DNA from: Carpediemonas membranifera BICM | Taxonomy: Eukaryota; Protista; Fornicata | Reading direction: 5' to 3' | DNA length: 64,000 bases | Assembly (NCBI GenBank): GCA_019828565.1 | Contig: JAHDYR010000003.1 | Span: 124,001-188,000, forward strand | Shown: piece after piece, positions 8,223 to 52,658 of the stretch | Layout: each line of letters begins with the position of its first letter | How positions within the stretch are numbered: position 1 is the stretch's first letter | Notes under the pieces: model-generated | What the model was told of the DNA's origin: nothing | Database searches by the model: none | The model's input: only the letters and a program-made list of their open reading frames with translations | Made by a program: the position numbers and the translations under genes

Positions 8223-11200
8223 TTACCACTTCTTCAGGCCTTCCACGCGCTCAGCCATCCATGCTGTCGACACCGCAGCCGGGTCATCGTCGCGGTCAAG
8301 TGCCTCGAGATACTCACGGACTCGTCCGTCGAGATGCTGTGCGCTGAACCGCTCGACGCGACGGATGAGCTCGTCGTCGTACTCGTCGTCAGGCGCCTGG
8401 TCGGCGTCGCTGTCAGTCTCTTCGGCCACGACAACCATGGGCTTAACCTGCGTCACAGAAACCGGCTGGGCGGGCTCTGCAGCAGGCTGGGTGGCGGTGT
8501 AGCCCTCGCGGAGGAGGGCCCTCGATGCGGCGGAGGGACTCGAAGAGCTCGGACGTCGACAGGATCTCCAGTAGCTGGGCGCGGTCGATGCCTGCCGTTG
8601 CGGCGACAAGGGCGCCGACGGGTGCGGCGGGAAGTGCCTGGCGCGGCGTGGCGGCCGTCTGCGGTCTTGTGGGGAAGGCGTCGGTCTCATCGTCGTCAGC
8701 GGCGGCGGCCTCAGCCTCGAGATACGCGCGCTCCTCTTCAGCCTGGCGCTCCTCGTCGAGCCGGCGGCGTTCCTCCTCCTCGATGCGAGCGAGCTCGGCC
8801 TGCTCTTCTTCCTCCCGCTTGCGCAGGGACTCGGCAAGCTCCGCCTCAGCCTCCTTGAGCTTCGCCATGCGCTTCCGTTCGCGGCGCTCCTTCAGCTTGT
8901 CCTGCAACATCTGCTGCTGGCGCTGGCGCTCGGAATCTATGACGCGGCCGAGGTTGTCGAGGTCGGCCTGGTGCTTGTCCAGGAGCTGCTTGCGCTGCTC
9001 GGCGGACATGTTGCCGAGCTGGGCCATCTCGGCCTGCTGCTTCTCCTTCTGCTTGTCGATGAGCTGCTGCTTGCGCTTCTCGAGCGCGTCCATGGCCTTC
9101 TCGGTCCGTTCGCGCTCCTTGCTCTCCTGCGCCTTGAGTTCGTCGTCGAACTTGTGCAGCTCCTCGTCAATCTTCTTCTTCTGCTCCTCCTCGTAGTGCT
9201 GGCGCTCATGCTTCAGGCGCTCGAGCTCCTTCTGCTTGGCCTCGTCGATGCGGGTCTGCTCGCTGTCGGCCTGGGGCTGGGTCGATGGGGCCGCGGTGAC
9301 CGCTGCAATCGACGTCGCGTTGCGGAGGGAGTCGTGGTGCTGCTGGAGTTGCGCCCTCATCTCCTGCTCCTGCTTGCGCTTCGCCTCGAGTTCGCGGCGG
9401 GCGCGGGCGGCGTCGAGCTTGGCCCTCATGGCCTCCTTCTGGCGCTGCCGCTCGGACTCTGCCTTGTCCATGGCCGTCTGGGCCTGGGTGTGCAGGCCGC
9501 TGATGAGCCCGGCCACGCGCTTGCCGACGTTCGCGCCGTCCTGGGCGGCCTCCTCGACCTGGGCGTTCCAGCTGCGGAGGACGCGGGTCTGGGCGGCCGC
9601 GGCGGTGTCCATGGCGTGGGCGAGCTCCGCCTCGAGGGCCTGCTCCTCTTCGGCGAGCTGGGTGGCGTTCGTCTCGACGGCCTGTACGGAGTTGATGCGT
9701 TCGCGGACCTCGCGCATGTGGGCGCGGGACAGCTTCTCCTGCTTCTCGCGGCGCTTGGCCTCGATGGCGGCCTTCGACTCGTCAGTCTGGCGGGCCCGCT
9801 CGGCCTGGAGACGCTGCTCCGTGCTGAGGCGGTCCTTCTCGTACTTGTCGAGGATGGCGAGGCGCTCATCGCGGTTGGCGGCCTGGGCCAGGTCAGACTC
9901 CTTGCGGAGGTACAGCGTCTTGAGCTCCTTGTTGCGGCGCCGCTCGATGTCGTTCTCGAGCAGAGTGGCGGCGGTGGCACGCTCCTCCGTCTCGGCGACA
10001 GCCACGACGGCCTGCTCGATGCGCTGCTTCTGCTGGAGCTGGCCGCGCTGCTCCTCCTGCTGGCGGCGCTGGGCCTCGAGGCGCTTACGCTCCTTCATGG
10101 CGGCGACGCGCTTGTCGAGGATGGCCTTCTGGCGGGCCTTCTCGGCAGCCAGCATGCTATCCAGCTCGGTGCGCTGCTTGGAGTGCAGCTCCGCGAGCTT
10201 CTTGGCAGCGGCGGGGTCCGATACGAGGGCCCGCTCCTTGGCCTGCTGCTGCTCGAGCTGGTCCATCGCCGCAGTCGCACGCTCCTCGACCTGCCGGGCG
10301 AAGTCGTTCTCGGCCTGCCGGACGTCGGCCTCGATGTCGGCCGTGATCGCGGCAGTCTCCTCGTGCTGGGCCTGCTTGACCGCCTCAGCGCTCTCGAGCT
10401 GCTGCTTGCGCTCGAGCTCGAGGCGCTTCCGCTGGGCACGGGCGGCGAGCTTGTCCTGGAGGTTCTGCATCTGGTGGGCGCGCTCTGCAGCGAGCTGGGC
10501 GTCGAGCTGCTTCATGCGGCCGTTGTGCTGCTTGAGCAGGGCCTGCTTGTCGGCCTTGGTCTTGGCCTCCTTCAGCCTGTCGTTGAGCAGGGCGGTCGCC
10601 TCCTTGCGCTTGACGCTCTCAGCCTGGTCGAGCTGCTGCTTCATCTGGGACGTCACCTGGGCCGCCTCCTCGTCGAGCACGGACTCCAGGGCGCCCAGGG
10701 CCCGCATGTGGCGGCTGGCCATGTCGGCGTCGTCGTCCGGGACATCGGGCACGTCCATCGTGTCGAGGGGCGAGCGGAGCGCGTCGTCCATCGCCATGCG
10801 GTCCTTGGCAGACAGCTGGCCACTCTCGGCGGACGCAGCCAGACGCATGAGAACGTCCATGAGCTCCTTTGGCAGCATCGCGGTGCCGGCGGCCGGGGCG
10901 GGTGTGGGGTCGACCGCCTGGGGCTTTCTTGAGCTGGCGCAGCTCGTTGACGGACTGCTGGGTGTCCTGCAGCATCGCCTTGGTCTCGTCGCGAAGGAGC
11001 CCGAGCTCCTCCATCTGGAGGGCCGCGTCGGCGAAGGCACGGTCGAGCTGGCCCTGGGCCTCCGAGACGAGCATCGCCACCTGGGCGTCAGCCTTGCTGA
11101 GGACGGCGTCAGGGTCGCGGGACGTGGCCGACTTCTTCTGGGCCTTGACCTGGGCGTCGATGATGCGGCGGGCCTGGCTCTGGAGGGTCTGCATGACGCC

Positions 11201-14200
11201 CTCGTGCTTGCTGAGGACGCCGCGCTCGGCATCGAGCTCGGTCTCGTCGTTGGCGCGGGTGGTCTTGAGGGCCTCGTTCGCGATGGCGGCGTTGGGGTCG
11301 ACGACCTCGCGGCGGATAGCCTCCTCGTTGACGTTCGACATCAACTCGGACAGGCCGGTGTGCAGCGCCTCGAGCTTTCTCCTCGAACTCGGCGACGGCG
11401 GCACCATGCTCGTCTGTGCCGGCGTGGTACAGCGCGATCTTCCCGAGCTGGCGCTTGAGTGTCTGCTCGACGTCCTCGAGGTTGGCCACACGGTCGGTCT
11501 GGCCCTCCTTGAAGCGGGAGCGGGCGGCGGTCTCAGCGGCGATGACCTGCTCGGCGTGGGCGATCTCGGCCGCGGCGTGCTCGTTGCTGACTCCGTTGAC
11601 CGTGGTGAGGGAGGCGGGGGTCGCCCCGGTCGCCATGACATGCTGGACGTCGTTGATGCGGTTGGCCATGTTGTTGCGGTGCTTGGCCATGACCTGGACC
11701 TCCTGCGAGCGCTTCTCCGCAATGGAGCTCCGCTTGGCAGCAAGGTCGCCGTCCACCTCGGCGCGGATGTCGTCGAGCTCGCGGCGGATGGACTGCAGCG
11801 CGCTCTGGTGGTTGGCGACGACAGTGGCCTGGTCGTTGGCGGTCTCCAGGCCCCGCTGGTACTCGTCCTCCGTCGCCTTGACGCGGGCAGCGAGCTGGTC
11901 GGCGGTCTCGACGGCGCGGGCGAGGTCGGCGATGTAGGAGTCGATGGCCTGAGCCTCGGCGCTGTCGATGCGGCGGATGTCGGAGCCGGTGAAGGCGACA
12001 GCGGAGCCCTTGGCGTCCACGGCGCCGCCGACGGCCATCATGGGGCCGAGGACGGGGTCGTCGTACATCTGGCCGAACGCGATCGGGACGCGCTGCTTGC
12101 CGCGGAGGGTCTCGCCGGCGACAGGCTCGACGATGCCGTTGGCGTTGATGCGGACGCCGGCGACGGGCATGAGCTTGCCGTCGACCATGGTCTGCGCGCC
12201 CTCGGTGATGGGCACGATCTCACCAGAAAGCGGGTCGCGCATGGTGCCGCCGAGGGCGACTGCGCGGCCCGTGTTGTGGTCGATTGTCGCGGCGAGCACA
12301 GGAACGGACATGCCCGTGACGGGGTCCGTGATCGTCTTGCGGCCGGCGTCCGAGAAGAACGCGTCGTTGTCGGCAGGGACGGAGACGGGGCCGACGCTGG
12401 GTAGGTAGGGCAACAGCTGACCGAGGGGGGCATCCTGGGCCTCGGCAGACGAGTTGTACAGCGCGGTACGGGCCCGGCGGTGGAGGGACGTCGCGCCGAT
12501 GGTCGGGAGGACGGACTTGGTCGCGGGGTCGACGACGTAGAGCTGGTAGTTGTCCGTGCTCACGGCGATGTCGCCCGCGTGGGTGCGGACGGTGGTACCG
12601 GGGGCGGGGTGGAAGAGGCCGGTGATCTTGTCCTCGATGACGACGTCCGTAAGCGCCCGGAGACCGCCGTCGGTGTCGGTGATGAGCGTGGGGTCGACCA
12701 GACGTCCGCCGACGCCAATAAGCTGGCCGCCCTTGACATCGATCTTGCGGCGCTTGCGCTCAGCCTCGGTAGCCTTGCGGAGACTCTCGAGCTTCTTCTT
12801 CGCCTCAGTGGTGCTGGGCAGGCGGTTGGTGTCGCCGCTCTCGACTGCGCGCTTGAGCTCCTCGAGCATCTGTGTGTGGAGGTCGACGAGACCGTGGTCG
12901 GCAGTCCTGAACTCCTTGTCGAACTTGCGGCGCGTGGCATGCTCGTTGTCGAGCTCGGCCTTGGCGCCCTGGAGCACCTTAGAGTAGCCGCTGGACAGCT
13001 CGCGGCGCTTGGCCAGGGGCTGGGCGACCCTGGGCTGTAGGGCCGCGACGTTCTTGGCTGGCATCATGCCGCGGTTAACGGCACCGGCGACGACACCCAT
13101 GCGACCGGCAAGCATCTCGCGGAGGTTTGTGGTCTCCTCGACGATGGCGTTGAAGATCCGGTCGGACTCTGACCTGTGGGCGGCCAGCTGGGCGGCGACG
13201 TGGGCGCTCTGGTCGTCGAGCTTGTCGTACAGGGTCTTGACGTTGAAGCCCTCGAGGTCGACCTGCCTCTCGTAGTCCCAGAACTCATCCTTGTATGCTT
13301 CCCAGTCGAGTGACTTGCCGTCGCTGCCGAGCACACCGGCCTCGTCTGTTGAATGGGCGGTGGCCGAGAAGTCGTGGGTCTGGCCGAGTCGACGGTACTT
13401 GGGCCGGGTCTTATCGATCTTCTGCCACGTCTTGCGGTTGAACCACCAGGCTGCGATGACGAGGATGATGACGAAGACGACGACGGTGGCGACGATGCCG
13501 ATGATGAGCGGCCAGTAGGTGGCGAGGATGAGGTCGCTGTGCTGGGCGATACCGAGCTCGACCAGGGTGGCTGCGGTGGTGTACGCGACCCGTCTCTCGC
13601 TGGGGCAGGCCACAGATTCGCCCATGACGGTGATGAGCAGGAGGTAGTCGGGGTTGTTCGAGTCGGCGAAGGTGTACGTGCCGGGCTCATTGAACGAGAA
13701 GCCGAAGGCGGTCACATTCGCGTAGTCCTGCTGCATGGCCTGTGCGAGCTGACGGAACACGCCGTAGTCGAAGTCGTCGTTCGTGTTGAACAGCGAGTCC
13801 TTGACGTACTCGGGGTAGTTGCCCGCAGACACGTCCCACACAACGCCCTCGTAAAGCTCCAGGCAGACAGTCGGCTGGGTCACACCGCTCGGGTCAGACG
13901 CGCTGATGTGGTCGGCGTCGATCCGTGCGGTGGGGGCTGCCGATTGGGCGATACCGAGGTCAGCCTCAAGCTGGGCGTCGACGATGGGCAGGGCCTTGCC
14001 GCGGTACGAGTCGGCCGAGGAGGGCGGGTCGTTGAACACGGAGGTCCAGTAGTCGACGTCGGGGTCGACCACGCCGATGAAGCCCTTCGTGGCGCTCATA
14101 GCCACAGCCTGGAGTGAGCAGCCGGCGGATGAGCTGTCGCTGCAGCCGAGCTGGGAGGACTCGAACCAGCCAGCCAGACTGCTGAACGAGAAGGTGGTAG

Positions 14201-17200
14201 CGTTGCCGCCCGATGACTGGAACACGATGGCCGTGCGGTCGCTGTTGGTCACGGCGAGGGTCGTCGCGGCAGCCAGGCACGTGCTGTTACAGATGGACTC
14301 GACGCTCTGGAGGCCAGTGCACTCGCAGATGCCTGTGTCGGCATTGAACTCACCAGTGCCAGTGGAGCAAGCAGAGGCGCAGGCGGAGGTGCTGGCTGAG
14401 GCAACACAGGCGCCATAGGCGTCGCGGGAGTAGCCAGTGTCGCAGCGGCTGTAGACGATCTCCTGGCAGTCGACAGTGGAGTCGCCCGTCATCACGTTCT
14501 GGGACTGGTCGTAGTACTCGTAGCCGGGCGAGCAGACGCAGGACCCGTCGGACGTCTGGAAGGCGCGGTTGGCGCCCGTGCACGTGCAGACGGTGGCCCC
14601 GGCCTTGGAGTACGAGGACGCGCCGCACGGGCTGCACTTCGAGGCGCCGGCGACGTTGTTGTACGAGTCAGCCTCGCACTCGGTGCATGCCTCAAGGGAC
14701 GTGCCGCCCGCGGTCGACCGGTAGGTGCCGGTGGGGCATGCGCTCGTCGTCGTGGCGCCGGCCAGGCAGTAGTACCCGGCAGGGCAGACGTAGCCCTTGG
14801 TGCCGTCGGTGGGGTTCGACACGCCTGAGCCCTCGAGGCAGATGTAGCCTGCGTCGCAGAGGGCCTTGGTCAGGCGGGCCTCGTCATTGCAGTAGTAGCC
14901 TGCGGGGCAGATGATGCAAGCCGAGTCGAGCGAGGCCTTGTCGTTGGTGGTGCTGTCGGGGTTGTAGTAGTAGCCGAGCGGGCAGAGGGTCGGCGACTCG
15001 GACCCCTCGGGGCAGTAGTAGCCCTCGGGGCACTCGTACTTGTAGATGACAGTGACGTCGTCCTCGTCGGTCTCGGGCTCGCAGTAGTAGCCAGCAGGGC
15101 AAGTCACACAGTCGGTGCTCGCGCCAGCCTTGACGCCGTCGAAGTAGGTACCAGAGGGGCACAGGATCGGGGCGGGTGTCGCCTCGGGGCAGTAGTACGA
15201 CTGGGCGCACGGGGACGTGGCGAAGTCGGACATGCCCACGGCATCACAGAAGTAGCCGGCCGGGCAAGTCAGGCAAGCGCTGATGTTAGTGGCGCCCTCG
15301 ACGGGGTTGTATGAGCCTGTGGGGCAGTCCTGGGGGTCCTTGTTGTATGGGCAGTACATGCCAGGGCTGCACAGGGAGGGGGAGTCGCCCGTGCACTCGT
15401 AGCCGGCGATGCAGGGCTCGCACTCGTCCTCGGAGATGGCGCCGGTGCTGAACGACCACATGTTCTCGGGGCACGCCACAGGGTAGTCAGTGCCAGAGGG
15501 GCAGTAGTAGCCGAGCGAGCACATCGAGCCGGAGGGCGTCGGCGTGGCAGACCCACCCGAGCAGTAGTACCCGGCCGTGCAGTTGGCCGTGACGGAGCCG
15601 TCGGAGCAGTAGCTGCCGGCGGGGCATGAGGCGCACTGGCTGGCGTCGTCGAGGCCGGTGGAGGTCGAGTAGGTGCCGGCGACGCACATCAGGGGAACAG
15701 AGGTGCCGGTCGGGCAGTAGTAACCTGCGGGGCAGACAGTCGGCGTGGACGCGCCGTCGCGGCAGTAGTAGCCCGCGGTGCACGTCTTGCAGGTGGCCTG
15801 GCCGGTCGAGCTCTGGTAGTAGCCGTCGGCACATGCGATGGGCTCGTCGGAGCCAGCAGGGCAGTAGTTGCCGACAGGGCACTTATAGCTCGAGGGGTTG
15901 GGTACGCTCGACCCAAGGTTCTCGGGGCAGTAGTACCCGGCGTCGCAGGTGCCAGTCGGGGCGCTGAGGCCCTTGGAGCCGCAGTAGTAACCCGCAGTGC
16001 AGGCGCCGCAGTCGTCACGCTTGTGCCGCCAGTGCTGGGGTTCATGGTCCCAATCGGGCATGCCGTGGCGGCAGAAGAGCCCAACCTCGCAGTAGTAGCC
16101 AGCGGGGCAGGGGACGTTACCGGCCTCGTCGTCGGGCATGTCAGACTCGGCGCCGCCAGGGCAGACGTAGCCGGCCTTGCACTGGCCAGTGGGGGCGGTG
16201 AGGGCCTCGCCGTTGCAGGCGTAACCCGGATCGCACTTGGTGCAGCTGCCGGAGCTGGCCAGGCCGGTGGAGTTCGAGTAAGTGCCGGCCGGGCAGTGGT
16301 GCTCTGTGGCGGCCTCGGTGCCGGTGGGGCAGTAGTAGCCGGCTGGGCACATGTAGTTGGTATACGCTGTGGTGGCCCCAGGGCAGTAGTACCCGGCCAC
16401 ACATGTCTTGCATAAAGTCTGTCCGGCGGTGTCCTGGTACGTCCCAGCAGCGCACGGGGCCGGGGAGGTAGACCCGGCCTCGCAGTAGTAGCCGAGTGGG
16501 CACTTGTTGCCGGTCGTGCCGTCAGTGGGGGCGGATGTGGAGGCACCCGCAGAGCAGTAGTAGCCCTCGGCACAAAGCGAGGCGTACGTTATCTGGCCCT
16601 CGGTGTCGCAGTAGTAGCCGCCGGGGCAGTCAAGGCAGTCGGCGAGGGAGCTGCCGCCCTTGGTCGGGTTGTAGGTGCCCGTGGGGCAGGCCGTCTCCTC
16701 GTAAGACCCGGCCGGGCAGTAGTGGCCCTTGGAGCACTGGCCCCCGGTGATGCCGTCCGTCGGGTTGGTGATGGACGCGCCGCCGATGCAGTAGTAGCCG
16801 GCGTCACAGTCGGCGTTGGCTACGGCGAGGCCCTCGACAGTGCAGGCGACGGCCTCCTCACAAGCGGGGCAGTCGGCTTCTTCGCTCAGACCGGTGTAGT
16901 TCGACGCGGTGCCAGCGGGGCAGGGGTGTGCTGTGCCGGTAGTCGACCCGGCAGGGCAGTAGTACCCGGCGGGGCACTCAGTGGGGTCTACCGTGCCGAG
17001 CTCGTCGCAGTAGTAGCCCGCGGGACAGGACTTGCATGTGCTCTGGCCAGTGGCGTCCTGGTATGTTCCAGCTGTGCAGGCGGTCGCCTCAGATGATCCG
17101 GCGGGGCAGTAGTAGCCAACCGGACACTTGTCTCCGGTGATGCCGTCGGTTGGGTCGGGCACAGACGCGCCGGTCTCGCAGTAGTAGCCGGCCGAGCAGG

Positions 17201-20200
17201 ACCCTGTGACTGTGGTCTGGCCGGTCCTCTCGCAGTAGAACCCGCCGCTGCAAGGGGCGCACTGGGATGCTGACTGGCGGCCAGCGGCCGTGCCGATGGT
17301 GCCGGGCGGGCACTCGGTCGGCACTGCAGTGCCCTCCTCGCAATAGAACCCGGTCGTGCAAGTCTTGGCGGCGTCAGAGGGAGTCGTCGCGCCCTCTTCG
17401 CAGTAGTAACCAGCGGTGCAGACGTCGTTGGGCGCAGTCAGACCAGTGGCCGAGCAGACCTGGCCAGCAGGGCACAGCAAGCACTGATCTTCGGCCTGGA
17501 GGCCCGTGGTGTCAGAGTAGGTGCCAGCCGGGCAGGGTGTGGCAATTGTGCTGCCCTCCTCGCAGTAGTAGCCGGCGGGGCAGACCGTACCGACGTCGAG
17601 GCCGGTGGTGGCACACGTGTAGCCGCTGGGGCAGGGTTCGCACGTTGACATTCTCTTGTCGGGCTGGAACGTACCGGCCTCGCAGGCGACGGGGGACGTC
17701 GAGCCGGCCGGGCAGTAGTGACCGACAGGACAGATGTCTCCGGTGGTGCCGTCGGTGGGGGTCGCAGTTGACGCGCCACCAAGGCAGTAGTAGCCGGCCA
17801 TGCAGTCGCCAGTGCCTGCTGCCGAGTTGATGCCCGTGGAGGCGCAGTACTTGCCGGCGGGGCAGTCCGAGCAGTCCTCTGGGCCCTCACCGCCGGTGGA
17901 CGGGTTGTAAGTGCCGAGACCGCATGGTGTAAAGGTGCTGGACCCCTCGGGGCAGTAATAGCCAACGGGGCACTCAGCTCCAGTGACCTCGTCAGTCGGG
18001 GTCGTCGTGGAAGCACCGCCTGTGCAGTAGAAGCCGGCAGCGCAGTCTCTATCAGGCGTAGACAGGCCGGTCGTCGTGCAGACCTTGCCAGCAGGGCACG
18101 GTGCGCACTCGTCCTCGGCCTGGAGGCCGGTGGTGTTGGAGTAGGTGCCGGCCGGGCAGGGGTTCGAGTACGGCAGGGAAGTGCCAGCGGGGCAGTAGTG
18201 GCCCGCCGGGCAGATGAGCGCAGCAGACATGCCCACAGCGTCGCAGTAGTACCCTGAGGGACAGGTGTCGCAGGTGCTCTGGGCGACGTCGGGCTGGTAC
18301 GTGCCGGGGTCGCACTCCTGGTAGGTGGTCGACCCCGAGATGCAGGCAGACCCGGCGGGGCACTCATCGCCTGTCATGCCGTCCGTCGGCGCGGGTGTGC
18401 TTGCTCCGCCAAGGCAGTAGTAGCCTGCGGTGCATGACCCCGTGACTGAAGTCAGTCCTGCAGTCGCACAGTACTTGCCTGCAGGGCAGGAGGTGCATTC
18501 GCCGCTTGTCTGCAGCCCAGTGGCTGAGCTGTAGGTGCCAACGGGGCAGTCGGTGCCGGCAGAGGACCCGGCAGGGCAGTAGCGGCCGGCCGTGCAGACG
18601 TTTCCAGTCGCGCCGTCAGCCGGGGTTGACGTGGATGCACCGGACGCACAGTAGTAGCCGGCAGTGCAGTCGCCCGTGACCGCGGTGTTGCCAGTGCCAG
18701 AACAGTACTTCCCGGCGGTGCAGGCGGTGCACTCGCCGCTAGAGGCGAGGCCAGTGATGTTCGAGAAGGATCCTGCGGGGCAGGGGTTGTCGTAGCGGGA
18801 GTCCTGGCCGCTGAGGCAGTAGTAGCCTGCGGGGCACTCAATGCCGGCAGTCATCTCGGTGTTGGGGCAGTAGTACCCGGCGGGGCAGTCGGCGCACGTG
18901 CTACCGCCGCTGTTGGGCTGGAAGGTGCCCGAGTCACAGGGGACGGGCGCCGCAGACCCGGCCTCGCACATGGAGCCGGCGGGGCACTTGTCTCCGGTGA
19001 GACCGTCTGTTGGGGTGGGGGTCTTCGCGCCGCCCGAGCAGTAGTACCCGGCGGCACAAGCGCCAGTGACGGCGGCGAGGCCGGAGCTGCTGCAGTAGGA
19101 CCCGGCCGTGCAGCTAACGCAGGCACCAAGGTCGCCACCGGTGGTGCCGGAGTTATAGGTGCCCTTGGGGCATGCAGTGGGTGACGATGAGCCAGCGGGG
19201 CAGTACTTGCCGGCGCCGCAGACGTTTCCAGTCGTGCCGTCAGTCGGGGTGGACGTGGTCGCGCCAGACACGCAGTAGTAGCCGGCCGAGCAGTTGCCCG
19301 TGGGGGTGGCGAGCTGAGTGGTCTCGCAGTACTGGCCGGCAGTGCAGGGCGTCTGGAAGGACGACCCAGCGGGGCAGTAGTAGCCGATGCCGCACACGGT
19401 CGTGGGTGTCGCCGAGTCAGTGCCGGAGGGGCAGTAGTAGCCCTCGGGGCAGGAACCGCTGGGGGCAGTCAGCCCAGTCGTCTCGCAGTATGACCCTGCG
19501 GTGCAGGACTTGCACTGGGACTGGGAGGTGCGGCCGGTGGACGCTGAGAACGTGCCGGCAGAGCAGGAGTACTGTGTTGCCGACTCGGTGCCGGCAGGAC
19601 AATAGTGGCCGGCGGGGCAGACGTTGCTGGCGTATGTGGCAGTGCCCTCGGGGCAGTAGTACCCAGACACGCAGGTCTTGCACGTGCTCTGGCCGTCGAT
19701 ATCCTGGTAAGTGCCCGCGGCACAAGCAATGGGGGCACCCGTTGCAGTGGGGCACATGTGGCCTGCGGGGCACTCGTCGCCGGTCGACCCGTCGATGGGG
19801 TTCGGGGTTGTCGCGCCGCTGGTGCAGTAGTAGCCGGCCGAGCAAGGTCCGCTCACGGCGGACAGGCTGGAGCTGCCGCAGTAGTAGCCTGCAGTGCAGC
19901 TTAGGCAGGCGTCGAGGTCTCCGCCCGTGGTGCCGGAGTTATAGGTGCCCTTGGGGCATGCAGTGGGTGACGATGAGCCAGCGGGGCAGTACTTGCCGGC
20001 GCCGCAGACGTTTCCAGTCGTGCCGTCAGTCGGGGTGGACGTGGTCGCGCCAGACATGCAGTAGTAGCCGGCGGCGCAATCTCCAGTCGGTTCCGTCCGA
20101 CCAGTGGCGCCGCAGTACTTGCCAGCAGTGCATGGGGTCGGGGCAGAGGAGCCGGCCGGGCAGTAGTACCCCTCGGGACAGATGACTTCAGCCGCCGAGG

Positions 20201-23200
20201 AACTGCCGGCGGGGCAGTAGTAGCCAGCAGTGCAGTTTCCAGTGGGCTCGGTCAGGCCAGTCGTCTCGCAATACTTGCCGGCAGTGCAGGAGGTGCACTG
20301 TCCAGGGGCCGACCGGCCGGTGGACGCTGAGAACGTGCCGGCAGAGCAGGAGTACTGTGTTGCCGACTCGGTGCCGGCAGGACAATAGTGGCCGGCGGGG
20401 CAGACGTTGCTGGCGTATGTGGCAGTGCCCTCGGGGCAGTAGTACCCAGACACGCAGGTCTCACACTCGCTCTGGCCGGCCTGTTCCTGGTAAGTGCCCG
20501 CGGCGCACGGGATGGGGCTGCCTGACCCGGACACGCAGTAGTAGCCGGCAGGGCAGATATTACCAGTGGTGCCGTCGATGGGGTTGGCAGACTGGGAGCC
20601 GCCAGTGCAGTAGTAGCCCGCCGAGCACAGCTCAGTGGGTGTAGACAGCGAGCTGGAGCTGCAGTAGGACCCGGCCGTGCAGCTAACGCAGGCACCAAGG
20701 TCGCCACCGGTGGTGCCGGAGTTATAGGTGCCCTTGGGGCATGAAGTGGGTGACGATGAGCCAGCGGGGCAGTACTTGCCGGCGCCGCAGACGTTTCCAG
20801 TCGTGCCGTCAGTCGGGGTGGACGTGGTCGCGCCAGACACGCAGTAGTAGCCGGCCGAGCAGTTGCCCGTGGGGGTGGCGAGCTGAGTGGTCTCGCAGTA
20901 CTGGCCGGCAGTGCAGGGCGTCTGGAAGGACGACCCAGCGGGGCAGTAGTAACCAGCAGAGCACTGGGCACCAGTCGTATCAGCCGGCGTGGCCGTCTCG
21001 GCAGACCCGACACAGTAGTAACCCGCGGCACACTCCCCCGAGACATCTGTCTGGGCGGTGTTCTCGCAGTAGTAACCGGGGTCGCAGTCGGTGCAGGCGT
21101 CCAGCTCAGTGAGGCCAGTCGCCGCGCCGTATGTGCCAGCGGGGCAGCTGTAGAGGTGCGGGTCCGTCGTCGAGACGGGGCAGTAGTAGCCTTGGGGGCA
21201 TGGGGTCAGCGTGTAGTCGCCTGTGCCCGACAGGCAGTAGTACCCGGCGGGGCAGGCCGTACACGAGGTCTGGCCGGCCTGGTCCTGGTACGTGCCCGCA
21301 GCACACGGGACGGGGCTGCTGGTGCCGGTGGGGCAGTAATAGCCGGCGGGGCATATGTCGCCAGTGACACCATCAATGGGCGTGGCGGAGGTCGCGTTCT
21401 CTGTGCAGTAGTAGCCGGCCGTGCACTGGGTGCCGACAGCCTCCATGTGGTCGTCGGGGCAGTAGTACCCGCCGGTGCAGGGCTTGCAGTCGTCCGCGGA
21501 CGCCTGGTTGAGCTGATCCTGGTAGCCCCCGGCCTCGCACGGTTCGGGGGCGCTGGACCCCTCGGGGCAGTAGTACCCCTTGGGGCAGTCGCCGCCGGCA
21601 GAGTCGGCGCCGTAGGCGTCAGTCGCGCCACCGGGGCAGTAATATCCCTCCTCGCAGAGCAAAGTCGCGGCTGACAGGCCAGTGGTGGGGCAGTAGTACC
21701 CGGCGGTGCAGCTAACACAGTCATCGACGGACTGAGCGAGCGTGCTGGGGCTGTACGTGCCAGCGGGGCAGTTGGTGCCGCTAGACGACCCAGCGGGGCA
21801 GTACTTTCCGGCGGGGCAGTCGGTTGGGGTCGACGTGGTGCTAGCACAGTAGTAACCTGCCGGGCATGTCTTGCATGTGGCGAGGCCGGACACATCGGCG
21901 TATGTGCCGGCAGAGCATGGCGTCTGGACAGATGAGCCAGCTGGGCAGTAGTACCCAGCGCCGCAGATGTCACCCTCGCCAGAGGCGGCGAGCGGTGTCG
22001 AGGACGTCGCGCCGCCCGAGCAGTAGTAGCCCTCTGCACAGTCACCAGTGACGGCGGCGAGGCCGGTGGTCTCGCAGTACTTTCCGGCAGTGCACTCCAC
22101 GCAGTCTCCGAGGGCGTCGGCGCCCTGGCTGTTCAGGAATGTCCCGGCGGGGCAGGCGAGCGGGCTTGAGGTCGCGTCAGGGCAGTAGTACCCGGAGGGG
22201 CAGCGGTCGCCGTAGGGTTGGCTCACAGGCGCGGGCTCGGTGGAGGAGCCTGAGCAGTAGTACCCGGCCGTGCAGTCGCCAGTGGGTGTGTCGAGCAGGC
22301 CGGCCGTCTCGCAGTACTGTCCACCAGGGCATGCCGTGCACTCAGACAGACTGGCGAGCCCGCTGGCAGTGGCGTATGTGCCTGCGGGGCACGAGGTCGG
22401 TACTGGACCCGGCGGGGCAGTAGGACCCCTTGGGGCAGGTCTGGGTCGAGTCCATGGCCGAGTTCGGGCAGTAGCTGCCGGCGGGGCAGGGCAAACAAGA
22501 CCCTTGGCCGGCCTGGGGCTGGTACGTGCCGGGGTCGCAGGGGGACTCGGCGATGGCGCCCTCCTCAGAGTAGTGACCGACGGAGACCTCGAACTGGGTC
22601 GGCGTGGACGAGCCGCCAGTGCAGTAGTACCCGGCGGCACAGTAGCCTGTCGTGGCGTTCTTCTCTGAGCCGGCGCAGTAGGACCCGGGCGGGCAATCGG
22701 TGCAGTCCGAGGCGTACCGGGCGCCCGTGTACGGGTTGTACGTCCCGGCCGGGCAGTTGGTGCCGGTTGCTGAGCCCTCGGGGCAGTACTTGCCGACGGG
22801 GCAGGGGCCGCCGGTGGGCAGGCCGGGGGGCGCTGAGGTGTAAGCCGCTCCCACGCAGTAGTAGCCGCGGTCACAGAGGCCGGTGGCGGCCGAGAGCCCG
22901 AGACCATCGCAGTATGACCCGGCGGGACAGTCGATGCAGTCCTCAGTGGACTTCATGCTGAGGGAGTTGCCGTAGGTGCCGAGAGGGCAGGGCTGGGGCG
23001 TATAGGACCCCTCGATGCAGTAGTAGCCGTTCGGACAGGCGACTGGATCGGCTGTCGCAGTGGGGCAGTAGAAGCCGGAGGGGCAGATTGAGCATGCGCC
23101 AACCTCACCTGCACCGGTCAGGTTGCGGTAGGTTCCGGCAGGGCATGAGATCTCGGTGGACGCCGACGACCCCGCGGGGCAGTAGTAGCCCTCGTCGCAG

Positions 23201-44904: not shown

Positions 44905-47247
44905 CTACTTCTTCTTCTTATGAACACGCTTCCCCCTCTTGACGCCCCGCATGGTGTAATGAACCACGGCCTTGCTGACGACGGTGGTCTGCTGCTCCTC
45001 GTCCGCCTCTTTGGCCACCTTCGCCGCGATCTTCACCCTGTTCTGAATCTCAGCGGGGATCGAATCTATTGAGATCTTCATGGGCTTGAGATTCTCCCTG
45101 AGATTGAGCTTGGTCGAGCTCTGCTCCAGCACGGCGAAGTCCTCGAGCTGGCTCTCCTTCACCAGCAGGAAGGCGTTGCCCGTCCTGCCCGCCCTCGCTG
45201 TCCGGCCGACCTTGTGGACGTACAGCTCGGGGTTGAGGGGCACGTCGCACTGGATGACGACCTCAACGAAAGGGATGTCGAGGCCTCTGCTGGCCACGTC
45301 CGTCGCAACCAGGACATTGGCTGTGCCGTTGGCGAAGCGGTTGAGGTACTCCATGCGCGTGTCTCTGTCCAGCAGGGAGCAGAGAGGCACGGCCTTCATG
45401 GACGCGCCCTCGCCCCAGAAGGCGTTGACGAGCAGCGCCACACGGATGGCCTCCTCCTTCGTCGGTACGAACACGATGTGCTTATGGCCGGCATTCAGCA
45501 TCATGAGGTGGATGAGGATCACATTTTGCAGGCCCTCGTGCTTCCGTCTGATCATTATCCTGCTCTGCCGCAGCGTGTCGACGGTGCCCTTGTCGACCTC
45601 GACGAGCGTCCACTTCTCTTCGCCAAGGACCATGTTCCTCAGATGAGCAACCTTCTCGTCGATGGTGGCGCTGAAGAGGGCGGTCACCCTGTTCTCCGAT
45701 CTCGGAATCTGGGAAATAATCTCCCGAATCTGCTCCAGGAATGACTTATTCAAAAGCTGGTCAGCCTCGTCGAGCACCAGATACTGCAGGTTGTTGAAGT
45801 ACGTCTTGATCAGAGCACCGTTGGGGCCTGTGAACTCAGCGAGCAGCTTGCCGGGCGTCGCCACGATGAAGTGCGGCCTATCCGAGAGATCAATGAAGCA
45901 TGGCTTGCCCTGGTGCTTACCGCTGGTCAGCGTCAGGACGTTCACCCGCTCCCCCACGATCCTACTGACGCTGGTGATGACCCCGGCGATCTGGGCGGCG
46001 AGCTCCTTGGTGGAGACGAGCACGAGCGAGTAGAAGCTGGGGCGGTCGGGGTTGGCGATGAACTTGTCCAGCATCGGGAGCACGAAGGCGCCGGTGTTGT
46101 GCGTGACGACCATCTCGTGGTTGATGACGAACCGTCTGTTGCCGTCGATGGTGAAGCCGTAGTAGTCGCCCACCGGCAGCCGCTCGACCGTGAAGGCCTG
46201 GCGGTGGTGGTCAGGCTGGGGGCGACTGGACTCAACCCGCAGAGGAAGGCGGGTCAGGTCGCCCGTGATCTCGCCCGACTTGGTCACCACCAGGCCCAAG
46301 GAGCGGGCCATGAAGGCGGCGTCGTCGACCAGACCCCTGGAGCCGGACTGGTAGCCGTTGGTGTCGACCAGGCCGGCCAGACACTGGCGCCGGGCCTCGG
46401 CGGGCCCGTACTTGATGGCTGGGGGAACGCGCTTGCCGTACGGACGCATGGCCTCGACGGGGTCGCGGTTGGGGAGGAGCTCCTCGATCGCCTCGAGGAC
46501 GGCGGCGGGGGTGTCCTCGGGCATGGCGTCGTCCCAGGCGGCCCCGAGCCAGGCCCCGACGACGTATGGGTGGACGGGGACGGCGGGGTCGGCCCGGCCG
46601 TGGAAGGAGAGCTCGGGGGCGATGACGGCCTTGAGCTCGGCCCGGATGGCGTCGGGGAGGGCGAAGTAGGATTCGACGGAGATGTCGAAGACGCCGTCCG
46701 CCGGGACGTTGAGGGGGTTGCCGACCACGGACGCCAGCCAGCCCTCGGCGACGGCCTTGGTGTCGAACTTCTGGGACTCGAGCTGGATGGCAGTAGCGCT
46801 GCCGTCTAGACCCAGGCTGAGTCTGTACGCCGCGGCAGCCCAGCCCTTGCCCTCGACCTCGGCCAGGCGCTGGGGCTCGGGCAGGGCTACCGTGAGAATG
46901 TGCGACATGTTGCATCTGAAGACCGCGCCGCCCTCTAGGGTGACTCTCGCCATCTCCTGGCGGCCAGTGGTGACGCTGGTGACGAGGCGGGGCGTCCCAT
47001 CGTCTCCCATGAGCCTCTCGCCAGCAACAATGTCCTGAACAGGTTTGAACTCACCATTAGCCATGAGAACAGGAGTATCTCTGGCCAGGCACTTGCCAGA
47101 GCCTGTCTTGGCGCTGCCGACCGCGTTCTCTCCCCTAGCGATGACCGGGATAACACGGCGCTGGACCTCGTATGGCTCTTTCCAGTCCATAAGAGTAACA
47201 GACTCTTCAATATCCTTTGACAGGCCGAGGTCTTGCCAAACGCCCAT
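44905..47247 (-). CDS. DEAD-box RNA helicase (Rrp3/Dbp8/Drs1-like), 780-aa precursor containing an intein; 448 aa after splicing
   Basis: Q motif, AKTGSGK|T split by the intein, TKELA, ATPGKL, DEAD, SAT, TDVASRGLD, HKVGRTARAG. Subfamily not resolved. Confidence 0.93.
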   Translation of the reverse strand: MGVWQDLGLSKDIEESVTLMDWKEPYEVQRRVIPVIARGENAVGSAKTGSGKCLARDTPVLMANGEFKPVQDIVAGERLMGDDGTPRLVTSVTTGRQEMARVTLEGGAVFRCNMSHILTVALPEPQRLAEVEGKGWAAAAYRLSLGLDGSATAIQLESQKFDTKAVAEGWLASVVGNPLNVPADGVFDISVESYFALPDAIRAELKAVIAPELSFHGRADPAVPVHPYVVGAWLGAAWDDAMPEDTPAAVLEAIEELLPNRDPVEAMRPYGKRVPPAIKYGPAEARRQCLAGLVDTNGYQSGSRGLVDDAAFMARSLGLVVTKSGEITGDLTRLPLRVESSRPQPDHHRQAFTVERLPVGDYYGFTIDGNRRFVINHEMVVTHNTGAFVLPMLDKFIANPDRPSFYSLVLVSTKELAAQIAGVITSVSRIVGERVNVLTLTSGKHQGKPCFIDLSDRPHFIVATPGKLLAEFTGPNGALIKTYFNNLQYLVLDEADQLLNKSFLEQIREIISQIPRSENRVTALFSATIDEKVAHLRNMVLGEEKWTLVEVDKGTVDTLRQSRIMIRRKHEGLQNVILIHLMMLNAGHKHIVFVPTKEEAIRVALLVNAFWGEGASMKAVPLCSLLDRDTRMEYLNRFANGTANVLVATDVASRGLDIPFVEVVIQCDVPLNPELYVHKVGRTARAGRTGNAFLLVKESQLEDFAVLEQSSTKLNLRENLKPMKISIDSIPAEIQNRVKIAAKVAKEADEEQQTTVVSKAVVHYTMRGVKRGKRVHKKKK
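46096..47091 (-). mobile_element. Intein (332 aa, VMA/Hint type) with degenerate LAGLIDADG homing endonuclease
   Basis: Starts CLARDTPVLMANG...MGDDGTPR; block B CNMSHIL; block F DYYGFTIDGN; ends VVTHN followed by Thr. Excision restores GSGKTGAF. Confidence 0.96.
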
Positions 47248-47565
47248 CGCTCGCCAGATCGCGGTTAAAGTGCGAAATGACGATAACAACCGTTGATAGC
47301 GGAGGAGAGTAGATATATGTGCAATGAAGCAACCAGCCAGTAACAACGCCTCACTGTGCTCGATTTCCAAACTAGGAGTGTCCCGGGGCCAACCCTCAAT
47401 GACGGCCAGCCCGCTCAAGAGAACTCAAGCCACGGTGCGGCGTCATCATGGCTGCCCGTTGATGACATGGGTGGCTGTATGCGCCATTCGGGTCCGTTTT
47501 AGCTTTTCGATATTTGGCCACAGCCGCGGGCTACAAAACGTGATTCAAGCAATAAGAAGAACAAA
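47248..47565. promoter_or_regulatory. Probable bidirectional promoter region
   Basis: 318 nt between divergent ATGs at 47247(-) and 47566(+); A-rich just upstream of 47566. No specific element identified. Confidence 0.45.
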
Positions 47566-48588
47566 ATGCCAAGATATTGTGGCAAGTACGTGCCAAACAG
47601 CTCTACTAACGCAGACCGTCCGTTATTCTCCTCCTAACTCACCCAGAACGTGTGTTTCTTACCCTCATTGACTATTATCCAGCCAGTTTGTCCAAAATTC
47701 CACAGTTTACTCAGGTAGTGCGTTCTACAGCATTCTCCTAACATAGCGAGTTCGTTCCCATCCACCATCCCTCTTATCCAGCGAGTTTGTCACCTCCTGC
47801 TAGTCTCACACAGCGCGTCCGTAGCTCCATTCCAGCCTAACACAGCGGGTACGTGATACATAGCCCATTTACACAGCAAGTACGTCCCTTTAACCCACCC
47901 TCACCCAGCGGCATGTTTGTATCCCCGCCTTGACCGTTACCCAGCCAGTAAGTTCACGCAGCTTTCCCTCACACAGCCAGTATGTTGCAACATGAACTAC
48001 CCATGTCTTACCCAGTTGCAAGTATGACCTTCATCCACCCTTCTTACGTAGTTCCAGCCAGTACGTCCCCAACACGCCCTCTGACACAGCCAATGTGACG
48101 AGTGCAAGCGAGTCGATGACCTCATCCACAAGGCCACGACTGACAAGATCACCATGGAAACCGAGATCCAGATCATCCCCCGTGACGAGACGAAGACCAC
48201 CATTGACGATCTCCTGAAGGTTATCACCCACATTGCCGAGGAGAACAACATCCCCAAGAAGTTCGAGATGCGGCTGACGGACCCCCACCTCACCGAGAGC
48301 CACTCGTGGAAGGAGTTCTTCAAGCAGCTGCTCACCGGTCACCCCGCGATCACCGTCAGTCTCAACAGTGACGGGCAGTTCGTATCAAACCCTGAGAACG
48401 CTGAGGTTATGGCCCTTGCTAATGAGATGAACTCCCACCTCTGCTGCGCCTACCACGGCCCGCAGGCGACGTTCTCGACCGTCGGCACTCCTAGGTCCCA
48501 GATCACCCAACTCATCTCACAGCACGTGGCCGAGATCGCCGAGCTCAACGAGAAGCTTGTAGCCATCGCCAAGTCCCGTAAGGAGTAA
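47566..48588 (+). CDS. Micro-exon gene: 16 exons/15 introns, 190-aa protein with an N-terminal Cys/His motif, function unknown
   Basis: Exons 47566-47585, 47615-17, 47647-49, 47683-85, 47715-17, 47747-49, 47782-84, 47814-16, 47846-48, 47877-79, 47909-14, 47945-47, 47977-79, 48016-21, 48052-60, 48090-48588. Spliced: MPRYCGKPTQYDDAGNGIHHCNSSHQCDECKRVDDLIHKATTDKIT, continuing in frame into ORF 48154..48588. Confidence 0.88.
47586..48089 (+). other. Tandem array of 15 tiny spliceosomal introns (28-36 nt), all phase 2
   Basis: Lengths 29,29,33,29,29,32,29,29,28,29,30,29,36,30,29. 14/15 donors are GTNNGT (one GTATGA); 15/15 end TNAY-NYAG. Same architecture as introns in conserved genes of this window. 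Confidence 0.92.
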
Positions 48589-48623
48589 GTTGACCAGTAA
48601 ACAGTGGTGCGTGTCTTTACCTG

Positions 48624-49472
48624 CTAGTACTTGTCGGCGTTGAGGACATCGAGCTGCACTTGCTCAGTGTGAATGCGGACGTCCTCCCGTCTCAAACGGT
48701 CGAGCACTCGCATGAGAAGGGGGGTGGCGACAGCAAATAATATAAAAACTAGGAATAATAAAACACCGGGGGCGCCACCCAAGATCACCCCGAGGAGCAT
48801 CGCTTGGCCCGTCCAAAGGCTATATGTCGCCACAGGTGCGCTCAGACGCAGCGTTCCCATAGCCTTGCCGTGCCAGACCAGGAGGAGCAAGCTTGAGTCC
48901 ATCATGACCCCCCTCAATGCAGGGGGGACGTATCCAGTGGCCAGCAGGATAAGGATGATCACGGCCGCCACTGCTGGAACTAGGGTTGCCCGTTCAGCGT
49001 GCTTCAGCTGGATAGTCTGGGAGGCTGGGTTAATGGACGCCGCGAAGAGGTACAGGAGCAGAAGGAGAGCGGCCCAGAACAGAGCCGTCGTCTCGTGGGC
49101 ATCCCGGAAGTAGACGACGTCCATGTGGGTCGACGCCACGCGAAGAAGACCGTAGCTGATAGATATGACTGCCTTGCGAACGATGGCGCGCCTGCTCCTG
49201 TCAAACGAGAGAGAGATCCCATTCTTTTGCGCAAAGGCTATGTACAACACAGAAAACACGGTGGCAAGAGCAATGAACAGGTTGGACAGGATTATTGGCC
49301 AGTCCGACTTCTCAGCAAGAGTTTTGTAAAAGACGATAACCAGGTTAAAGACGTTCAGGATGGTCTGCAGCGGCATCCAAGCTATAGACAGGTTAGCGAG
49401 ATACCATTCCGGCACGAGCGTATTAAATACACCGGGTGATACCCGAAGGCGCTTCTTTCCTGCGCCATCCAT
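48624..49472 (-). CDS. Hypothetical multi-pass membrane protein, 282 aa
   Basis: ATG ORF with about 7-8 hydrophobic segments; no family recognised. Confidence 0.65.
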   Translation of the reverse strand: MDGAGKKRLRVSPGVFNTLVPEWYLANLSIAWMPLQTILNVFNLVIVFYKTLAEKSDWPIILSNLFIALATVFSVLYIAFAQKNGISLSFDRSRRAIVRKAVISISYGLLRVASTHMDVVYFRDAHETTALFWAALLLLLYLFAASINPASQTIQLKHAERATLVPAVAAVIILILLATGYVPPALRGVMMDSSLLLLVWHGKAMGTLRLSAPVATYSLWTGQAMLLGVILGGAPGVLLFLVFILFAVATPLLMRVLDRLRREDVRIHTEQVQLDVLNADKY

Positions 49473-49653
49473 GAACTTTCACAGAGATAAGATGCCAGGA
49501 TGTCGTGGCCATTATCCTTAAAATGCGACTTCTGAACAGCTGCTAGACAGGGTTAGCTAGGGCTTAACAACACCTCAGACGGCCTTTCCCAAGTGCGTTT
49601 TTCCATCTCGTTTTTTCAGCTGCGTAATCAGGCACTATCCCTAAAACGAGCGA

Positions 49654-50574
49654 ATGGCCGCCGCTGATAAGCAAAAGGTACGTCACAACATCAAGTATCG
49701 TCACATAGAAAGTGAAGGCCCTCACAGCAAACGGAGCGAACAAGTTCTGCTGTGACTGTGGTGCCAAGGGTATGTTCATTCCGATCAAAGCACTAACGAA
49801 GCACCTGGCTGGGCTAGCTTGAACCTTGGTGTGTTCTTCTGCATCAACTGCTCCGCCATTCACCGTAAGATGGGCGCGCATATCAGCCAGTGCAGGTCCG
49901 TCACTCTCGACGAGTGGACCACCGACGGCTACAACCGCATGATGTTCATGGGCAACGAGCGGGCCCGGCCCATCTGGGAGGGCAAGCTGCCTGATAACTT
50001 CGCCCGCCCCACGGACGCTGGCCGCGAACAGTTCATCCGGGACAAGTACGAGCGCCGCAAGTACTTTGTCGCACCCACCGACGCCGACGTTGCAGCCTTC
50101 CTCGAGGGCAAGACGCCCAAGATGTCTGCCCGTCCCACGGTGACCCAGACTATGGCCGCCCCCCCTCAGGAGGAGGACCCCTTCCCCTCGGTCTCGGCCC
50201 CTGTCACCTTCTCCCCGGGCCAGCAGGACAAGCGCAGCTCCCACAAGAACGAGCAGGACCTGATGGCGCTCTTCGGCAACCCCGTCACGACCCAACCCTC
50301 CCCTGTCGGCGTCTCGGCAACCCCCGCCAAGACCAAGTCCACCCCCGAGGCCCGCGAGCCCCCGGCCTCCATGGATAGCTTCTTCACTGTTGCCGAGACC
50401 CCCGCCAACTTCGCGGCTCCCGCCGCCCCCGCCTCCGCCGCCCCCGTGAACTTCACTGCCCCCGCCGCTGCGAGCCACGGACACACTAGCTCCCTGTCGA
50501 ATGTCGAGAAGGTCGAGGCACCCGTCGATATCAAGAGGAGTGCCTTCCTTAGCGCCTTTAACGACACTTTCTAA
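49654..50574 (+). CDS. ArfGAP domain protein, ~285 aa, 3 exons
   Basis: After removing 49678-49708 and 49770-49801: [45 protein letters not shown]. Confidence 0.93.
49678..49708 (+). other. Spliceosomal intron, 31 nt
   Basis: GTACGT...GTCAC-ATAG; removal links the ATG to the zinc-finger frame. Confidence 0.85.
49770..49801 (+). other. Spliceosomal intron, 32 nt
   Basis: GTATGT...CTAAC-GAAG (AAG acceptor); restores the CxxC-x16-CxxC finger. Confidence 0.9.
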
Positions 50575-50753
50575 TTAAAATGTAATGTTGTGCCGGGCTA
50601 CAAGACCAAGGGGCGACAGATTGAGTTATGTGGGGAGAGCAGTAGCTGCATGATGTGTATGCAAGCCATACCCGGCTCTGCGTTGCTCCCAGCGGTGGTG
50701 TGGGTCCATCATTTGATGGGCAACATTGGAACAGAACAAGACGGGCATAAGAA

Positions 50754-52334
50754 ATGGACAACAAGGCCAAAGGAACAGCCAACTACAAGGCCAAGCGATT
50801 TGACCTTGCAATCAGCTTCTATCTTAAGGCTGCATATGACGCCAAGCTGCGTGGGGACTATCTCGAGGTCCAGCGTCTCTACGGGAATGTCTCGGCCGCT
50901 GCATTCGAGCTGGGGCAGCTGGAATACACCATTGAATGCTGCAAGGCAGCTGTATCTTACGAGCCTGACGACACTCCCGAGGACTTCAAGGAGAAGATGA
51001 GGGTCCGCCGTGCCAGCGCAGAGGCTCTCCTGGCCACGCCTTTGCCCGCGCCCCAGCTCTGCCAGCAGTCCGAGTGCGACTACAGCCTGAGCTATCCGCC
51101 TGCTGTTGTCTGGGCGCCGGGTAGTACTCCAGGCATGCAACTACAGGTGGCCGCGACGATGCTCTTCTTCAGCACTCAGCGCCCAGACATGAACGTGGCG
51201 TCTGTGAACACAGTGGGGCTGGGTGACCTTCTGCTAGCAGCCCAGCAGTGCTACATGCCCGTCCTGACTGAGGGCACATCAATCGACGCCTACACCTCCC
51301 TCCCCCCGCCCAAGAGGAAGCCGCTCGTCGTGCAATGGACGCTCCACACGCCAGACAGCGGAGTGGCCAAGGCTATGGCAGCAATACTGCGGCTGATCAG
51401 GAGCAGACACGCGGGTCAGGTCGGAAAGGACGTGATTGTGTCAGAATATAGGGAGACGGCCAGCATGCTGCACAGGATCTCTGCTGGTGACATTGATGAC
51501 GATCTTCTTGCCACTCTTAGAACCGCGGTGGACGCGAGTGTTGACGGGCAAGACTCGTCGGAGGTGACAAAGGATGACTTCATGTTCAATCTCAATATTG
51601 GATCGAATCTTGTGGTCCAGCTGATATCCATGTCCGTGGCGGACATCAGGGTCACTGTGACATCATCTCTCCCGCCCCACTCAGCCGAGTTCGACTTCAT
51701 TTACATGACCCAACCCACCCTGCCCCTGCTCCTCCACTGGACGCCCCTCCTCGCTGTGAGGGCTGCCTCGAGACTTGTCTTCCCTATCTCCTCCTCTGCC
51801 TCGCCCTATGACATTGTGTCGACTGTCCTGACCCTCCCCAGCGGCACCGCGCCCTCAGATGTGCAGGCTATGTCTGCTGCGATCACTGGTGCAGTGGTCG
51901 ATCTGACGATGACCTCTTCCAGCCATGTGGTCATGGCCCCGCTGCTTCCCCTGTCATTCCCCGGTGACGGCGAGGCTGCTGACCTCGGCATCGACGAGCC
52001 CGTCATCCCATCTGTCGATCATAGCCCAAAGGCCCAGCCCATTCTCGCAGACCCCTTCGCCTACCAGCTGCGGCACGGCCCCCACGCATGCAGGGCCTGG
52101 CTCCAGTATCTGCAGGCCGTGTTCGGCGAGGACCCCGTGCTCGCCCAGTCCGTGCGGGAGATCAGCGCGAAGGCGTCGGCCCGCGCGGTGCCCATGGAGA
52201 GACCATCGCCGCATCAATTGATTAGTGTGTTCAAGAAGATGGATGGTGGCGACGCGGTTCGGCTGGCCCTGGTGAGGGCTGTGGAGAGGCGGGCCGTGAC
52301 GAAGAAGGCTGCCCTGTCTCTTATAAACGGGTGA
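50754..52334 (+). CDS. TPR-containing protein, 526 aa
   Basis: KAKGTANYKAKRFDLAISFYLKA and YGNVSAAAFELGQLEYTIECCKAAV TPR units. Confidence 0.75.
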   Translation: MDNKAKGTANYKAKRFDLAISFYLKAAYDAKLRGDYLEVQRLYGNVSAAAFELGQLEYTIECCKAAVSYEPDDTPEDFKEKMRVRRASAEALLATPLPAPQLCQQSECDYSLSYPPAVVWAPGSTPGMQLQVAATMLFFSTQRPDMNVASVNTVGLGDLLLAAQQCYMPVLTEGTSIDAYTSLPPPKRKPLVVQWTLHTPDSGVAKAMAAILRLIRSRHAGQVGKDVIVSEYRETASMLHRISAGDIDDDLLATLRTAVDASVDGQDSSEVTKDDFMFNLNIGSNLVVQLISMSVADIRVTVTSSLPPHSAEFDFIYMTQPTLPLLLHWTPLLAVRAASRLVFPISSSASPYDIVSTVLTLPSGTAPSDVQAMSAAITGAVVDLTMTSSSHVVMAPLLPLSFPGDGEAADLGIDEPVIPSVDHSPKAQPILADPFAYQLRHGPHACRAWLQYLQAVFGEDPVLAQSVREISAKASARAVPMERPSPHQLISVFKKMDGGDAVRLALVRAVERRAVTKKAALSLING

Positions 52335-52658
52335 GTGTTGTCTCCTCTGCTGACTGTAGTGTTAAAACAATGGCATGGTTGGCCAAACTGACTGGCTTGC
52401 CATGAAAGGGGGAGGGCATATCAAGATCTGATCTCAATCTGGACCAAATTTCCGAGATGCAGTATCCTTAACATGGCAGCCCTGTATCTTGGTCACGATT
52501 TAGCAGAAAATTTACAGGTGTGAAGATCGTCTCTATGAGTAGCTTGGCGTGGATAAGGCCGTCTGAAGGCCTGATCCCGGCTGGACGTCATGGCTGTAAA
52601 AAAAGATGCCGACAAAATTCTGCCAGTTCGCTGAAGCACACAAAGAAAGATATCCAAG

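Follow-up and report, generated by a model that had tools for sequence, protein, structure and literature searches.

A run of 15 minute introns, separated by 14 micro-exons of which most are a single codon long, belongs to a genuine nuclear gene of Carpediemonas membranifera that is expressed and that keeps all 14 micro-exons (54 nt) in its mRNA. The array occupies positions 47586..48089 on the forward strand of the window, as we call the whole 64,000-nt stretch analysed here, which lies on contig JAHDYR010000003.1 of the C. membranifera assembly (JAHDYR; 57.1% GC; PMC8516963). These 504 nt parse into introns and exons without remainder, and our parse returned the same 15 introns and 14 internal exons, at the same places and with the same sequences, as a preliminary description made from the DNA letters.

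Exon 1 (47535..47585, +) comprises a 31-nt 5′ UTR, ATG 47566 and the first cysteine, C5, and ends two bases into codon 7; its start is given by joins to adapter at 47535 in two cDNA contigs (X1 and X2, described below). The introns begin at 47586, 47618, 47650, 47686, 47718, 47750, 47785, 47817, 47849, 47880, 47915, 47948, 47980, 48022 and 48061 (+), are 28-36 nt long (29 nt in nine of the 15), together make up 450 of the 504 nt, and are all in phase 2. The internal exons measure 3, 3, 3, 3, 3, 3, 3, 3, 3, 6, 3, 3, 6 and 9 nt; all 14 are symmetric, 11 are 3 nt long, and successive 5′ splice sites stand ~32 nt apart. Nine consecutive 3-nt exons come first (exons 2-10, 47615..47879, starting at 47615, 47647, 47683, 47715, 47747, 47782, 47814, 47846 and 47877), followed by exon 11 (6 nt, 47909..47914), exon 12 (3 nt, 47945..47947), exon 13 (3 nt, 47977..47979), exon 14 (6 nt, 48016..48021), which carries the second cysteine, C21, and exon 15 (9 nt, 48052..48060), all on the forward strand. 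Exon 16 (48090..48612, +) encodes C27 and C30, one ~85-aa alpha/beta repeat domain and a long C-terminal helix, with the stop at 48588 and a poly(A) site at 48612. Translating the spliced model gives a frame that is open from ATG 47566 to TAA 48588 (190 aa), and the unspliced array has stops in all three frames.

The splicing signals are equally regular. Exactly 15 GTNNG sites occur in 47586-48089, one per intron, and the expected match to a shared consensus held up: every intron has T at -8, A at -6 and a YAG 3′ end, and 14 of the 15 start with GTNNGT. The intron interiors are G-poor. With GT...YAG ends and a branch point at a fixed distance from the AG in all 15, the introns fit the U2 type in its short metamonad form. 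Chains of introns reach a length of 15 at the array; the maximum was 2 among 3000 dinucleotide shuffles, and 1 in the remainder of the window, whichever strand is taken. Ordinary introns are indeed few in the other 63.5 kb, although the earlier count of six was low; we find about 8-10 candidates, two of them RNA-confirmed, still fewer than the array's 15. These two lie in an ArfGAP gene, at 49678-49708 and 49770-49801 (+), and the second ends in AAG rather than YAG. A 3932-aa ORF at 11109-22907 (-), apparently made of repeated cysteine-rich units, produces false intron-like matches on the forward strand at 19095, 20664 and 21685.

No tandem repeat or satellite was found at the array locus. We also rejected introners, or recently copied introns, as its source: the interiors are not copies of one another, as had been noted at the outset, and show no mutual similarity by our tests (p 0.085 overall; p 0.31 for adjacent introns).

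RNA contigs from four runs (X1-X4) were compared with window positions 47150-52550. X3 and X4 appear to be a single data set deposited in duplicate and were counted once; that they are RNA follows from their contigs, which skip the two ArfGAP introns. X1 and X2 each contain one ~650-nt contig that runs from adapter through 47535-47585, 54 letters and 48090-48612, with poly(A) after 48612 in X2. Among the 16,384 inclusion patterns of 14 exons, only full inclusion reaches a total of 54 nt. In X4, a loose end of 20 letters precedes 48090. It is identical to the final 20 nt of the predicted micro-exon string, has no counterpart in the genomic window, and reads exons 13, 14 and 15 and the last two bases of exon 12 directly. 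The first 34 of the 54 letters, exons 2-11 among them, are confirmed by length only. Together, the 20-nt match and the 54-letter joint confirm removal of introns 12-15 from the mature mRNA by sequence and of the other introns by total length, and they place the array exons among coding microexons, that is, internal exons of at most 27-30 nt present in mRNA. Thus the proposal that ATG 47566 is joined in frame to the downstream ORF through 14 micro-exons agrees with the cDNA contigs, in which none of the outcomes named beforehand as contrary to it (a start after 48089, retention of the region, or its removal as a single 504-nt intron) is seen.

As predicted for gene finders in general, the public call on this contig misses exons 1-15 and begins at ATG 48154, giving 144 aa. 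Taken at face value, that call would mean that there is no micro-exon array, and that the region is one 504-nt intron, non-coding repeat DNA, or simply upstream of the annotated gene. We give this reading practically no chance: it is refuted by the 54 letters between exons 1 and 16 and by a spliced 20-mer that genomic DNA does not contain, and it is at odds with the lack of tandem repeats at the locus and with paralogue homology that starts upstream of 48154.

Neighbouring genes lie close by. A gene on the opposite strand has its transcript end at 48609-48610, which touches the poly(A) site at 48610-48612 or overlaps it by a few bases. Head-to-head with the micro-exon gene is a DEAD-box helicase gene (44905-47247, -) that contains a Hint-family intein (PF05203, residues 54-382; ~46096-47091), inserted directly after the Walker A G-S-G-K and ending in H-N before T.

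In the RNA contigs, which drop rare forms, we saw no skipped-exon form, only full inclusion, and no retained-intron form of the array transcript. At a depth of 63.5, the X2 contig continues without a break from the adapter to the 3′ end, and this transcript has no variant bubbles. In the neighbouring gene, X2 keeps variant bubbles at depths of 5.6-12.6, so a skipping isoform that made up more than roughly 10% ought to have been visible. In the X2 sample, fully included transcripts would thus predominate, at roughly 90% or more, as far as contigs, which drop rare isoforms, can show. In X3/X4 (depth ~860) the contigs are fragmented over the 5′ end and none is placed over exon 1.

These observations bear on whether the array is a diversification cassette like the micro-exon genes (MEGs) of schistosomes, in which symmetric one-codon exons would be skipped combinatorially, at a low level or under other conditions. 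All exons are symmetric, any junction made by skipping would stay in frame without a stop, the array coincides with the family's most variable loop, and exon 15 contains an in-frame alternative AG at 48057; the missing contig over exon 1 in X3/X4 could also stem from heterogeneity. Against this, the unbroken contigs show only full inclusion, X3/X4 contigs break inside exon 16 as well, and the X4 loose end uses the 48051 acceptor of exon 15. Stop-free skipping was rejected as a sign of selection, since 33% of exon-order shuffles also give it, and duplication of intron-plus-exon units would yield symmetry with no selection for skipping. The product, moreover, has no signal peptide. We therefore regard such a cassette as unlikely, and the Schistosoma-like variation by exon skipping hinted at in the preliminary description is so far unsupported.

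What does the array encode? The 190-aa product begins with a hydrophilic, cysteine-rich region, judged by eye to be without a signal peptide, that contains the motif C-x15-C-x5-C-x2-C, most of it encoded by micro-exons. The pattern Y-C-G-[KR]...Q-C-x-x-C may, as a tentative lead, resemble a motif without a name that occurs in HECTD4-like and protist proteins. Protein and structure searches used exon 16 as the query. A word-index search found no homologues of exon 16 outside this genome, and phmmer against 1.84 billion proteins returned only same-genome paralogues and one unrelated repeat protein (P0010). Exon 16 had no Pfam match, and its model (pLDDT 85.8) had no fold match (best Z 4.5, Foldseek E 0.28, Atlas TM below 0.4). 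In these searches, its ~85-aa alpha/beta repeat was found only in Carpediemonas, where it occurs in large proteins, encoded by the same genome, alongside WD40, ankyrin or kinase domains. The members of this undescribed repeat family, seen only in this genome, are P0002-P0009 and P0011 (loci L002-L010).

The annotated N-termini of these paralogues read through intron-like DNA, and most of those of P0002-P0009 and P0011 appear to be wrong. Parsing the DNA instead predicts three introns each in L002, L003, L004, L006, L007 and L010 and four each in L008 and L009. In all eight models every intron is in phase 2, the exons measure 3-15 nt, and the predicted N-terminal motif is C-x2/3-C-x4/5/8-C-x2-C, with a first spacer of 2-3 residues compared with 15 in the window gene. 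The position of intron 1 is shared by all eight models and the window gene: it falls within the second codon past the first cysteine. Intron 2 of L008 (2671-2700) is ambiguous, either 21 nt with GT-AG ends after a 9-nt exon or 27 nt with CT-AG ends after a 3-nt exon; the frame is preserved in either case. P0007 (L005) combines the domain with another N-terminus, and of the introns its gene has just the last.

Six paralogues have a longer second intron of 61-68 nt (L003:3073-3136, L004:3055-3115, L006:2869-2932, L007:2973-3040, L002:5041-5104 and L010:3443-3505). It contains a conserved stem, mostly with a GAGA tetraloop, and folds at -12 to -14 kcal/mol, leaving 26-33 nt unpaired; the hairpin is no more stable than those of shuffled sequences (z 0.05 to -1.5). 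This intron has the look of a pair of tiny introns merged across a relic exon of 3 or 6 nt whose donor is GC, and the relic may be a skipped or optional micro-exon.

A second array came from a scan of metagenome contigs for the intron-chain pattern. Forty of its 41 hits were plain tandem repeats. The remaining one, L037 (PPCM01004241.1; GCA_002919055.1, run SRR4018424), has, as predicted from DNA, 17 introns in phase 2 that measure 29-36 nt and separate 16 internal exons, of which twelve are 3 nt long. Its exon 1 ends in Y-C-G-K, like that of the window gene, and its motif, C-x18-C-x5-C-x2-C ending in H-Q-C-x-E-C, has the same cysteine scaffold around an 18-residue loop of unrelated sequence. 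In both assemblies built from those reads, one 29-nt intron-like unit (L037:3028-3056) has CG in place of AG at its end; as the 9-nt exon that follows carries the second cysteine, this unit would be a non-canonical acceptor or a damaged allele. The L037 introns cannot be aligned to those of the window array, and similarity tests gave p 0.28 within L037 and p 0.39 between the arrays. We do not claim orthology, since the last exons do not align and the neighbours differ. The organism is probably C. frisia, judging from the GC content of a sister contig (57.9%, published value 58.6%), the same intron signals, and a run number that seems to fall within the range of the Hamann 2017 submission. Public gene calls miss this array as well as that of the window gene.

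Four conserved cysteines in two knuckles are thus present in ten of ten models, nine of them predicted from DNA only, and suggest a zinc finger with a variable loop. The cysteines would bind zinc and present the loop as a binding surface, and as paralogues add WD40, ankyrin and kinase domains, we propose a family of cytosolic adaptors or sensors. Taking all the evidence together, the explanation we favour, and consider probable, is that of an expressed gene with ruler-guided, mostly constitutive splicing, an origin by unit duplication, and a zinc-binding variable loop.

How might such an array be spliced? Donors ~32 nt apart leave no room for exon definition, so each ~29-nt intron would be recognised alone, by intron definition, through GTNNGT and a branch point fixed 6 nt from the AG. 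Spliceosome footprints are established, and two spliceosomes cannot sit 3 nt apart; neighbouring introns would therefore be removed in turn. Consecutive intron removal has been reported around plant microexons, in the accessible part of that account (PMC8831610). For an exon to be skipped, an intron of 60-72 nt that lacks a stable stem would have to be removed, in breach of the ~30-nt ruler of the lineage. In Giardia, Spironucleus and Trichomonas, according to the portion available of one report, long introns fold to the length of short ones (PMC6679479); the introns that skipping would create in the array have folding energies of only 0 to -8 kcal/mol. A length ruler would thus explain faithful inclusion.

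A single phase-2 intron behind the first cysteine may have been the seed of the array, which would have grown as intron-plus-codon units were duplicated again and again, long ago, with later, scattered intron losses merging exons into pieces of 6-15 nt. This is suggested by the uniform phase 2 in ten genes, the fixed first intron, and a loop length that tracks intron number (2-3 residues for 3-4 introns, 15 residues for 15 introns, and 18 for 17). As intron interiors lack mutual similarity, the duplication is deduced rather than seen, and, with no sequence trace of it left, a dense ancestor that eroded in the paralogues would fit equally well. On the duplication model the array would act as an in-frame expansion joint, letting loop length differ in steps of a single residue among paralogues and species. 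It is a tentative possibility that one-codon-per-exon arrays are maintained by selection in Carpediemonas as dedicated diversifiers of a putative zinc-finger recognition loop in sensor-like proteins, with single-residue edits arising by combinatorial skipping or by in-frame unequal crossing-over between the tiny introns.

Alternatively, the introns themselves could be what matters, with 15 serial splicing steps tying output steeply to spliceosome capacity, as a delay or stress switch, and the peptide secondary. The crowding of introns into 504 nt relative to the rest of the window, the recurrence of the dense design in a second organism with introns that do not align, and the frameshift that most single retained introns (28, 29 or 32 nt) would cause all fit such a regulatory load. 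Full-length mRNA is present with no retained form seen, though, and the paralogues have just 3-4 introns, which makes this quite unlikely in our estimation.

The closest known layout is that of the Schistosoma MEGs, reported as flatworm-restricted, with runs of 10-20 very short exons that are mostly multiples of 3 and are missed by automatic annotation; the exons are mostly 15 bp, the introns 0.1-5 kb, and the products secreted and alternatively spliced (PMC10526429, PMC4350168). The window gene shares the run of tiny symmetric exons and the failed annotation. It differs in exon size (3 nt in 11 of 14), in its introns of 28-36 nt, in the small part that micro-exons play in the coding region (54 of 573 nt, the bulk lying in one ordinary exon, whereas small symmetric exons make up most of the coding sequence of MEGs), and in a product without a signal peptide by eye. 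As for a pool of skipped isoforms, only full inclusion is seen, in contigs that drop rare forms.

Animal neuronal microexons, in the partial accounts considered here, measure 3-27 nt, are regulated by SRRM3/4, and are isolated cassettes in long introns that need exon-definition enhancers. They too are in-frame exons of down to 3 nt that alter protein surfaces, but the minimal introns of the window array leave no room for enhancers. The plant microexons, as far as the available sections describe them, are coding exons of 1-15 nt that complete conserved motifs, are usually included and are misannotated (PMC8831610). The window array resembles them in all these respects and, on our model, in the consecutive removal of flanking introns; the densest plant case in those sections is two adjacent microexons of 5 and 12 nt, as against 14 in a row here. 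With Giardia, Spironucleus and Trichomonas, whose introns have a branch point fused to the 3′ splice site and a uniform short length, long ones being shortened by stems, the array shares short uniform introns and a branch point tied to the 3′ splice site; these species have few scattered introns, and the part of the source at hand describes no array, in contrast to the 15 introns here (PMC6679479). Precedents exist for single 3-nt exons and for adjacent microexons in pairs. The impression that a run of one-codon exons is undescribed stands, in that we found no report of a comparable array in the literature searched, where coverage of subscription journals was thin. The window gene is thus an extreme variant of the micro-exon gene layout, RNA-supported, common to a family and present in a second organism.

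Carpediemonas, a free-living and intron-poor protist, builds a cysteine-rich domain almost one amino acid per exon. With nine 3-nt exons in succession, the gene is a natural test of the limits on exon size and spacing, and it makes intron definition, splicing order and the proposed metamonad length ruler testable on one apparently well-expressed transcript. It also suggests a route by which introns multiply and a loop grows one codon at a time. Finally, public records apparently mis-call N-termini across an entire Carpediemonas gene family, a point of relevance to the use of this genome in arguing for the absence of genes.
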